Shown one piece after another: positions 3,001 to 6,000 of a DNA stretch of 64,000 nucleotides. The position numbers and the translations under genes were made by a program. The DNA is from Macrostomum lignano (taxonomy: Eukaryota), in contig NIVC01000428.1 in NCBI GenBank assembly GCA_002269645.1, positions 1 to 64,000 on the forward strand, in the 5' to 3' direction. The notes under the pieces are model-generated. The model worked only from the letters and a program-made list of their open reading frames with translations, searched no databases and was not told the origin of the DNA. How positions within the stretch are numbered: position 1 is the stretch's first letter; each line of letters starts with the position of its first letter.

Positions 3001-6000
3001 GGCCAACATTTGAGCGCGACCAGCTGTTCCCGCTGTTCGAGAGCACCTTCCCGGAGATCCTTCGCTATGCTATTCAATTCCTCACCTTCAAGATTGACGT
3101 CCTCGAGGCGTTCATCGTGCGACAATGCTGCGACCTGCTCGAAGGCCTGATCCCGAAGCGCGAGGAGAAGGAGGGCGCGCTTAGGCCCGAGTTCTACCGC
3201 AGGCTGTACGTGTTCACCATCATGTGGTCGGTGGGCGCGCTGCTGGAGTGGGAGGACCGCAACAAGCTCGAGACGCAGATGCGGGAGCTGAAGCTGGACC
3301 TGCCCGAGTATGCAGCCGACTCCGACAACACCATGTTCGACTTCCTCGTTGGAGAGTCCGGCGAGTGGCAGCACTGGGACGAGAAGGTGGAGGAGTTCCT
3401 CTACCCGACCGACAGCACCCCCGAGTACGGCTCCATCCTGGTGCCCAATGTGGACAACGTGCGCACCGAGTTCCTCATCCACACCATTCACAAGCAGGAG
3501 AAGCAGGTGCTGCTGATCGGTGAGCAGGGCACGGCCAAGACCGTCATGATCAACAAATTCCTGGCCAAGTTCAACCCGGAGGAGCACATGAACAAGGCGC
3601 TCAACTTCTCCAGCGCCACCACGCCGATGATGTTCCAGCGGACCATTGAGAGCTACGTGGACAAGCGCATGGGCTCGACCTTCGGCCCGCCGGCCGGCCG
3701 CAAGATGACCGTCTTCATCGACGACATCAACATGCCGGTTATCAACGAGTGGGGCGACCAGATCGCCAACGAGATCGTCCGCCAGCTGATGGAGAACTCT
3801 GGCTTCTACAACCTGGAGAAGCCGGGAGACTTCACCACCATCGTGGACATGCAGTTCATGGCCGCCATGATCCACCCCGGCGGCGGCCGGAACGACATCC
3901 CGCAGCGGCTGAAGCGCCAGTTCAACATCTTCAACTGCACGCTGCCGTCCAACCCGAGCATCGACAAGATCTTCAGCGTCATCGGCTGCGGTCACTACTG
4001 CGAGGAGCGCGGCTTCCCCGAGGAGGTGCGCGCTATGGTGGCCAAGCTGGTGCCGCTGACCAGGCGCCTGTGGCAGCTCACCAAGATGAAGATGCTGCCG
4101 ACCCCGGCCAAATTCCACTACGTGTTTAACCTGCGGGATCTCAGCCGGATCTGGCAAGGCATGATCAACACCGTCAGCGAGGTGGTCAAGGACTCCAGCG
4201 TGCTGCTCAGCCTGTGGAAGCACGAGTGCTGCCGAGTCATCTCCGACAGGTGAGCGCGCGGTGAACATTGAAATGAATGCTTGCTGTTAGTAGGATTATC
4301 TTAAAGTCAAATAGAACCATCTAGCTACTGTTAGTAGGATGATTTCAAAGTAAAAAATACAGCCATCTAGCTACTGTTAGTAGGATTATCTTAAAAGCAA
4401 ATAGAGCCATCTAGCTACTGTTAGTAGGATTATTTTAAAGTCAAATCCAACCATCTAGCTACTGTTAGTAGGATTATCTTAAAGTCAAATAGAGCCAACT
4501 AGCTACTGTTAGTAGGATTATCTTAAAGTCAAATAGAACCATCTAGCTACTGTTAGTAGGATTATCTTAAAGTCAAATAGAGCCATCTAGCTACTGCTAG
4601 TAGGATTATCTTAAAGTCAAATAGAGCCATCTAGCTACTGCTAGTAGGATTATCTTAAAGTCAAATAGAGCCATCTAGCTACTGTTAGTAGGATTATCTT
4701 AAAGTCAAATAGAGCCATCTAGCTACTGTTAGTAGGATTATCCTAAAGTCAAATAGAGCCATCTAGCTACTGTTAGTAGGATGATTTCAAAGTAAAAAAT
4801 AAAGCCATCTAGCTACTGTTAGTAGGATGATTTTAGAGTCAAATCGATTTATCTAGCTACTGTTAGTAGTATTGTAAAAAGTAACAAAGGTGCAGCATTT
4901 TCATATTTTTAATATTTCAGCTGATTGAATACTTCTTACACTGTGATTTGAGTAAGACTACGAGTGTATCTGTACCTCTTCCTTGGCATTTCCTGTTTTT
5001 TAAGTTTCTTTTTAAGTTTCATTTCTAAGTTTTTCGTAACCGCTAGTTATTTATTTCGATGTCCAAATCTGCAACCCAACTCGCTGATTTTCTTTGCTAT
5101 TCAAATTGAAATTCGACTGTCACTCTCAGATTCACCACTTATGACGACGTGAACTGGTTCGTGAAGACCATGAGCCGCGTGCTAGTGGAGGACATGGGCG
5201 ATGATGCTGGGAAACTGCTGGAGCCAACGCACTACTTTGTGGACTTTCTCAGGTGGTCCTGGTGTCTTAGAATCCCGGAAAAATGATTTGTGGCTAACAG
5301 ATTTAAAACACCAATTTATTGTTTGCACCCTTGACACATTTTCCTTTACCTTTATTAATCAACTGACTTGCAGTGATTCTATTTAAGCTAAACCCCTCTT
5401 AACTATGCACAATTTTTGCACCTTTGATTTTTCTAAACACTTTCGATGCACTGAATAACCTGCAATAATTCTAGCGGCCTACGCTGGAATGGTTGCTAGG
5501 GGAAGGTAGGAATTCAGAGAATAGAGAAGCTACCAGTCGCTCCTCTGCCACCCATCCGAGGCAGATTCGTGACGTTTGCCGACATCGGCTGGTTCGACAA
5601 GAGCATGAAGCGGCTCGTCCAGGAGGACCTCGGCGACCTGTTTGACCCCATCATTGATAGGATGGATTTTTTTGTCAACTTTCTCAGGTGCAAATCATTT
5701 AGGGGGGGGGGGGCATACCGGATATGCCTCTACCGCGAGTCCATGATAGTTCGCTGGTAGCTCAAAATAGTTTTATCTAAAGTCTATTATTAATCTTATC
5801 CTATGATTATACCAGCACTTTAACCCGGCTAATTAACACACAGTTATTACTCTCTAACAACATAATATTTAGCCAGTTTTAACTAAAGTAACTTACAGTT
5901 CTGCATGCTTCGAAGTCTTGTGAAGTCTTGAGAGACGCAACCTCGTTTCTAGGAAGGAAAAAATGCTATAAAATTTTAACTCTGAACAAATTTCGCCCAT

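Follow-up and report, generated by a model that had tools for sequence, protein, structure and literature searches.

The first 11.8 kb of a 64,000-nucleotide stretch of the Macrostomum lignano genome (NCBI GenBank assembly GCA_002269645.1, contig NIVC01000428.1, positions 1 to 64,000 of the forward strand; hereafter the window) encode, on the plus strand, the motor domain of an axonemal dynein heavy chain in which a 123-nt exon was tandemly duplicated long ago, with both copies retained as coding sequence. We predict that the two copies, exon variants A (5130–5252) and B (5565–5687), form a mutually exclusive pair of which each messenger RNA carries exactly one, a reading to which we assign a probability of roughly two in three. 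If so, the gene would give rise to two heavy-chain isoforms that share a fold and are distinguished by the loop preceding the strand that leads to AAA4 and by a single face of the final AAA3-lid helix. We consider this isoform switch a well-supported prediction from the genomic sequence.

Both variants lie on the plus strand, enter and leave in phase 2 and encode 40 whole residues between two split arginine codons; they are open in the dynein frame only and contain no stops. Canonical splice sites flank each of them (acceptor ..ctctcag and donor gtggtc for A, acceptor ..gaggcag and donor gtgcaa for B), and an intron of 312 nt (5253–5564, plus strand) separates the two. The encoded peptides align without gaps and are identical at 16 of the 40 whole codons (18 of 42 positions, or 43%, when the two split arginine codons are included), and the gapless nucleotide alignment shows 73 identities in 123 positions, A being the copy nearer to the orthologue consensus and B the more derived. 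These features and coordinates bear out the initial annotation, which had described two stop-free phase-2/2 exons of 123 nt encoding the same 41-residue segment at this level of identity and had placed the start of the next exon at 6007. Searches of each peptide against the window with tblastn returned the partner copy at an E-value of about 2e-9 and nothing further, so the likeness between A and B is not a matter of chance and the 64 kb hold no third copy of the segment. A haplotype or assembly duplication was ruled out as the source of the pair, the copies being just 59% identical in nucleotides. Published criteria for predicting clusters of mutually exclusive exons (Pillmann 2011, PMC3228551; Hatje 2017, PMC5740500) look for neighbouring internal exons without a constitutive exon between them, of equal length and phase, with AG/GT splice sites, no in-frame stop and significant peptide homology, whose segment occurs exactly once in homologous proteins. 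All of these were found for A and B, and the pair thus has every sequence-level property of a predicted homologous mutually exclusive exon cluster.

The host gene is intron-poor. The motor domain that it encodes here extends from the P-loop of AAA1 (GPAGTGKT, about position 175, at the start of the window) to a stop codon at 11755–11757, with exons at ..–300, 906–1288, 2112–2298, 2386–4249, A, B, 6007–6076 and 6580–11757, and the Pfam domains AAA_7, AAA_lid_1 and AAA_8 follow one another in this order. All exons that surround the pair are on the plus strand. Upstream, the constitutive exon 2386–4249 carries AAA2, AAA3 and most of the AAA3 lid (Pfam AAA_7 and AAA_lid_1) and ends with ..CCRVISD and the AG of a split arginine codon in front of a strong donor, gtgagc. 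Downstream, the constitutive 70-nt exon C (6007–6076), which completes the arginine codon, adds 23 residues and aligns to DNAH5, precedes a single terminal exon of 5.2 kb (6580–11757; Pfam AAA_8) that spans AAA4 to the C-terminus, stop included. The C-terminal 1,725 residues therefore lie within one 5.2-kb exon and AAA2 and AAA3 within one exon of 1.9 kb, and the A/B pair belongs to a cluster of small exons flanked by the two largest exons of the gene.

A 176-residue stretch across the site matches human DNAH5 (8J07 chain n0, residues 2782–2959) with E-values of 1e-71 to 1e-72, and a 4730-residue chain from bovine sperm doublets (9FQR I3) is matched at 4e-67 and 5e-63; all remaining heavy-chain classes reach 1e-33 or weaker. 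Because the matches to DNAH5 and the sperm chain far exceed those to every other class, the sequence identifies the gene as a DNAH5/8-type (gamma-type) outer-arm heavy chain, and the tandem exon duplication that had been proposed inside an outer-arm motor domain is supported by the same matches. The sperm chain is evidently DNAH8 under a misassigned molecule name: 9fqr_I3 is listed in the Protein Data Bank (PDB) search table as 'Cilia and flagella associated protein 57' despite its 4730 residues, and several other 9FQR chains carry names at odds with their length, as though the name table of the entry were shifted.

The duplicated segment is single wherever else it was found. Among 155 homologues that hold it, none has two copies; it is single in each of the solved dyneins, human DNAH5 and the sperm heavy chain in the PDB among them, and 16 genomic loci of other organisms have one copy each. 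The initial annotation had held that DNAH5/8 carry this segment once, between the AAA3 lid and AAA4; the single copy stands, and the placement needs amending, as Pfam AAA_lid_1 runs into the segment. Protein searches with isoform A, isoform B and the first 450 residues encoded by the last exon gave best identities of 64% in the region of the segment and 76% in the AAA4 region, and an exact look-up of the terminal-exon open reading frame (ORF) returned no match. A metagenome scan with the variant-B peptide yielded 12 loci, each with a single copy and none above 58% identity, and at four loci from two European Nucleotide Archive (ENA) assemblies there is neither an intron around the segment nor a second copy of it. 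One Logan contig (P0048) reads in frame through an intron exactly at VIAD|R, so that the intron 5' of exon A is common to at least one other species; at another locus (L015, 5072–5327) an intron lies inside the segment instead. The closest available relative, at 76% identity in AAA4, is the source of ENA ERZ25068803 contig ctg11842l, on which two complete DNAH5-type genes (L001 and L002) with introns of about 55 nt stand in tandem at 105.9–153.2 kb, two gamma-type chains having arisen there through whole-gene duplication.

Several properties of the two copies show that both have been maintained as coding sequence. Scored against a profile hidden Markov model of 114 distinct orthologous segments taken from database hits, with A and B themselves excluded, A reaches 60.9 bits and B reaches 50.5. 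Neutral decay of either copy, simulated under intron base composition to 25, 35 or 50 nucleotide differences with 3000 runs each, brought the mean profile score down to between -1.5 and 20 bits; the score of the real partner was reached by at most 0.07% of the decays (0.07% at 25 changes, none of 3000 at 35–50), and only 18–48% stayed free of stops. The GC content at third codon positions (GC3) is 0.75 in A and 0.80 in B, against 0.89–0.92 in the large exons of the gene and a total GC of 0.34–0.41 in the surrounding introns. Synonymous divergence between the copies (dS) is about 1.2 and thus saturated, with a nonsynonymous divergence (dN) of about 0.5, so that a dead copy should have drifted to intron composition, and neither A nor B has done so. 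Not one indel accompanies the 50 substitutions. The differences are also placed as selection would place them: columns at which A and B agree have a mean entropy of 1.21 bits among orthologues, against 2.70 at those where they differ (Mann–Whitney p = 6.5e-5). Of ten near-invariant residues A retains all and B nine, the exception being a change of D to N in FVDFLR. This agrees with the earlier observation that the anchors (W-F, E-D-x-G and FVxFLR) are kept while surface residues differ, the differences falling on columns that vary between species. Because profile score, GC3, the absence of indels and the placement of differences concur, we conclude from sequence comparison that both copies have been under purifying selection ever since the duplication, which is old. 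A ranks second in nearness to B among about 120 orthologues, and B ranks about fifteenth in nearness to A; a lineage-specific duplication after which B diverged faster fits these ranks.

In AlphaFold models the segment folds into the final long lid helix of AAA3, followed by a short helix or a loop and then by a beta-strand (YFVDFL in A, FFVNFL in B), whose pairing partner is the strand IYEPIP from the exons downstream. The models of isoforms A and B have identical secondary structure, with a mean predicted local distance difference test (pLDDT) score of 82.4 for A and 84.0 for B, and both superpose on the AAA3–AAA4 regions of solved outer-arm dyneins with template modelling (TM) scores of 0.7–0.77. 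Within the 19-residue helix, five non-conservative changes between A and B (D/A, N/G, V/D, S/K and V/Q) are spaced 3-3-4-4 and all sit on the same face of the helix (moment 0.78, permutation p = 0.015), and nearly all residues of the loop that follows differ. According to the models, the core would be common to both isoforms, and the differences would form a surface patch. Outer-arm arrays of Tetrahymena have the linker of the neighbouring heavy chain docked in grooves of the AAA3 small domain and, in the post-2 state, an AAA3 extension touching the linker (PMC8500839). It is plausible that the segment tunes linker/AAA3 contacts in such arrays, and any functional effect of the exon choice may run through the AAA3-lid surface as a docking surface between linker and ring.

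Two sequence features may bear on how one exon would be chosen over the other. The donors of A (gtggtc) and B (gtgcaa) are weaker than the five constitutive donors (gtaagc, gtgaac, gtacga and, twice, gtgagc). Fifteen nucleotides downstream of the weak exon B donor lies a run of 12 G (5702–5713, plus strand), the longest G run in the window, where runs of at least eight G number only six on the plus strand in 64 kb. G runs just downstream of donors are known splicing enhancers, and this one is a candidate intronic splicing enhancer that possibly acts on exon B. Before exon B the AG-free zone is just about 30 nt long, which points to a branch point near B. Our best guess is that cell-type-specific, trans-acting splicing factors, working on the two weak 5' splice sites, would regulate the choice between A and B.

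The familiar cis-acting devices offer no evident account of exclusivity. Steric hindrance of the tropomyosin type, which needs a donor less than about 50 nt from the next branch point, is precluded by the 312-nt intron between A and B; there is no AT-AC or /GTATCCTT intron that would make U2 and U12 sites incompatible, all donors being gtg or gta, U2 type, within GT-AG introns; and since 123 = 3 x 41, nonsense-mediated decay cannot police joint inclusion. In a survey of human exon clusters, U2/U12 incompatibility explained fewer than 1% and steric hindrance about 9%, and 60% of clusters contained exons of a length not divisible by three (PMC5740500). The initial annotation had argued that exclusivity here needs an active mechanism; the argument is fair, in that joint inclusion stays in frame, and by that survey such a need is not unusual. 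The introns around A and B share no similarity beyond a block of 13 nt that spans the 3' boundary of each exon (ACTTTCTCAG|GTG). Two minisatellites on the plus strand lie nearby: one of 13 units of 44 nt (4284–4873), each with a small palindrome (CTACTGTTAGTAG), makes up most of the intron 5' of exon A, and one of 27 units of 13 nt (6170–6523) lies in the intron after exon C. A stretch about 30 nt upstream of exon B, AAGCTACCAGTC (5527–5538), is complementary at 11 of 12 positions to the minisatellite unit GACAGGTAGCTT, of which at least 14 copies (6272–6507) show this complementarity against a chance expectation of about 0.04. As a splicing device, such pairing would loop out the constitutive exon C and offers no sensible model, and we regard the complementarity as probably due to chance. 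The upstream 44-nt minisatellite also contains AGCTAC.

Several considerations weigh against exclusive splicing. In one alternative both exons are included together, constitutively or as a cassette, so that the AAA3 lid would contain an internal repeat of 41 residues. No known cis mechanism for exclusivity is evident, so nothing found in cis forbids splicing from A to B: in an inverted-repeat list and a duplex scan with 40-nt windows over the three introns, intron–intron pairing was no better than in shuffled sequences, the values of the best observed duplexes being reached by 9, 6 and 2 of 30 shuffles. The exon length, a multiple of three, keeps double inclusion, and equally double skipping, in frame. 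Many similar neighbouring exons in human genes are not mutually exclusive, and 654 of 1,722 predicted novel human exons were validated (PMC5740500). Against joint inclusion stands the absence of any homologue or solved dynein with two copies, together with the fit of A and B to one structural slot, for which both retain the residues. The exon ends within a beta-strand that has one partner, and the exon carries the core residues W, F and FVDFL, so that the strand of a second copy would presumably be left unpartnered. Because homologues are single-copy, the strand has one partner, the aromatics are buried and both variants are predicted to adopt the same fold, one exon per messenger RNA is the most likely outcome, which matches the pattern seen in general, with exclusive exons coding for parts that lie within secondary structure elements (PMC5740500), and a protein with both segments is unlikely. 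The evidence for selection lifts the use of both exons well above the prior set by the human survey; it does less for the claim that they are never used together.

That same evidence bears on a further possibility, in which the duplication left one of the copies, B being the likelier, as a dead relic that is never spliced in. B is further from the consensus than A (50.5 against 60.9 bits), has N for D in the near-invariant FVDFLR and has purines directly before its acceptor; yet neutral decay almost never preserves such a score (0 of 3000 runs at 35–50 changes, 0.07% at 25), its GC3 of 0.80 has not relaxed toward the introns despite saturated dS, and it has no indels and differences that avoid conserved columns, which together make a dead B very improbable. 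A broader doubt concerns the gene as a whole, and with it exclusive splicing, since two 1-nt frameshifts in the AAA1 exons could mean that the copy in the assembly is broken. At a C5 run (108–112) six C would be needed, the frame reading ..VITP and then a stop where 10 residues are expected; at a G3 run (928–930) four G would be needed, ..GLAQSGSW being followed by loss of frame before GCFDEFNRI. The gene copy might then be a very young pseudogene and the exon pair a relic of a once functional arrangement. Both frameshifts fall in homopolymers, typical sites of long-read assembly errors, and they look like such errors, although the coding sequence is about 8.2 kb long and it is odd that both lie in its first 0.7 kb. 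The remaining 7.5 kb are intact: no stop interrupts the 1,863-nt exon or the terminal exon of 5,175 nt, and the GC3 of both is about 0.9, so any inactivation would have to be extremely recent, and we consider a pseudogene improbable. Mutually exclusive use of A and B remains the reading that we favour.

Outer-arm dynein sets ciliary beat frequency, and vertebrates have separate genes, DNAH5 and DNAH8, for airway-type cilia and sperm. More tentatively, we suggest that M. lignano may deploy two gamma-type chains, distinguished solely by a patch on the AAA3-lid surface, in different ciliated cells, for example somatic multiciliated cells and sperm; that the isoforms serve epidermal cilia and sperm, as the initial annotation had it, is pure speculation. 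Were such deployment real, it would be an exon-level counterpart of the vertebrate DNAH5/DNAH8 split and would single out the surface of the AAA3 lid as a place where outer-arm coordination is tuned. If A and B are spliced exclusively, the 41-residue module would be a part worth varying between otherwise identical motors. Because the AAA3 grooves and extension are linker docking sites (PMC8500839), it would offer a compact, testable handle on motor–motor coordination.

The remainder of the window has an unusual style for an animal genome, in that exons with a GC3 of about 0.9 alternate with introns of 0.34–0.41 GC and minisatellites. The latter fill nearly every intron and intergenic stretch, among them 1320–1991 (24/186-nt units), 4284–4873, 6170–6523 and many sites between 12 and 60 kb. 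In the dynein intron 301–905, a transfer RNA (tRNA)-Val(CAC)-like sequence (424–495, plus strand; Rfam tRNA 34.4 bits, also called by ARAGORN) is possibly the head of a tRNA-derived short interspersed element; Rfam and tRNA scans returned no other element. Beyond the dynein gene, a fragment of a long-terminal-repeat-type retroelement (16825–19102, minus strand) has a gag-like ORF, a zinc knuckle, and integrase zinc-binding and core domains; among the ORFs scanned, none between these domains encodes a protease or reverse transcriptase. A receptor tyrosine kinase with immunoglobulin, Frizzled-type cysteine-rich and kinase domains (ROR/MuSK-like) follows at 45324–54868 (plus strand), and 58023–63999 (plus strand) encodes vitellogenin-N and open beta-sheet domains of a large lipid transfer protein (vitellogenin-type lipoprotein).

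In the literature searched, we found no description of exclusive exons in the motor domain of an axonemal dynein. The initial annotation had likewise known of none, a view to be softened in the light of related precedents. Alternative splice forms occur in the motor domains of some dynein heavy-chain genes (Kollmar 2016, PMC5100056), and a mutually exclusive exon has been predicted in the cytoplasmic dynein heavy chain DHC1 of Schistosoma mansoni (PMC3228551; noted again in PMC5100056). The Schistosoma pair resembles A and B in the identical length of its members, the split codons at both ends and strong homology, and on the alignment of other heavy chains one of its copies was considered obligatory; it too is a prediction. 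Unlike A and B, it belongs to cytoplasmic dynein 1, and its place in the motor is not stated in PMC3228551 or PMC5100056. Exon 6 of Dscam and the 14-3-3 zeta gene, with their docking and selector RNA elements, solve the problem that A and B would pose, the choice of one exon even though joint inclusion would be in frame; unlike in those systems, no docking- or selector-like complementarity above that of shuffled sequences was found in the three introns here.

Among motor genes, the closest parallel is Drosophila Mhc, in which tandem exons of equal length and phase likewise encode alternative versions of one motor-domain element, with core residues kept and surface residues varying. Mhc belongs to a different motor family, and its exon clusters have been proven through transcripts and isoform-swap experiments, whereas the A/B pair is predicted. 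If the prediction is right, an axonemal dynein joins the motor genes that are diversified by exclusive exons. Two gamma-type heavy-chain versions in one genome are also what DNAH5/DNAH8 and the tandem genes L001/L002 provide, but there a whole gene of roughly 14 kb or more was duplicated, as opposed to 123 nt. The score of A against B over the 42 residues is 104; that of human DNAH5 against the sperm chain is 65. Of the two variants, A is the better match to the sperm chain and B to DNAH5, and a correspondence of A to DNAH8 and of B to DNAH5 was rejected, as margins of 5–13 bits on 41 residues are too small and the gene duplication in vertebrates is presumably lineage-specific. Because only 123 nt are duplicated in M. 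lignano, the predicted isoforms can differ in this segment alone.

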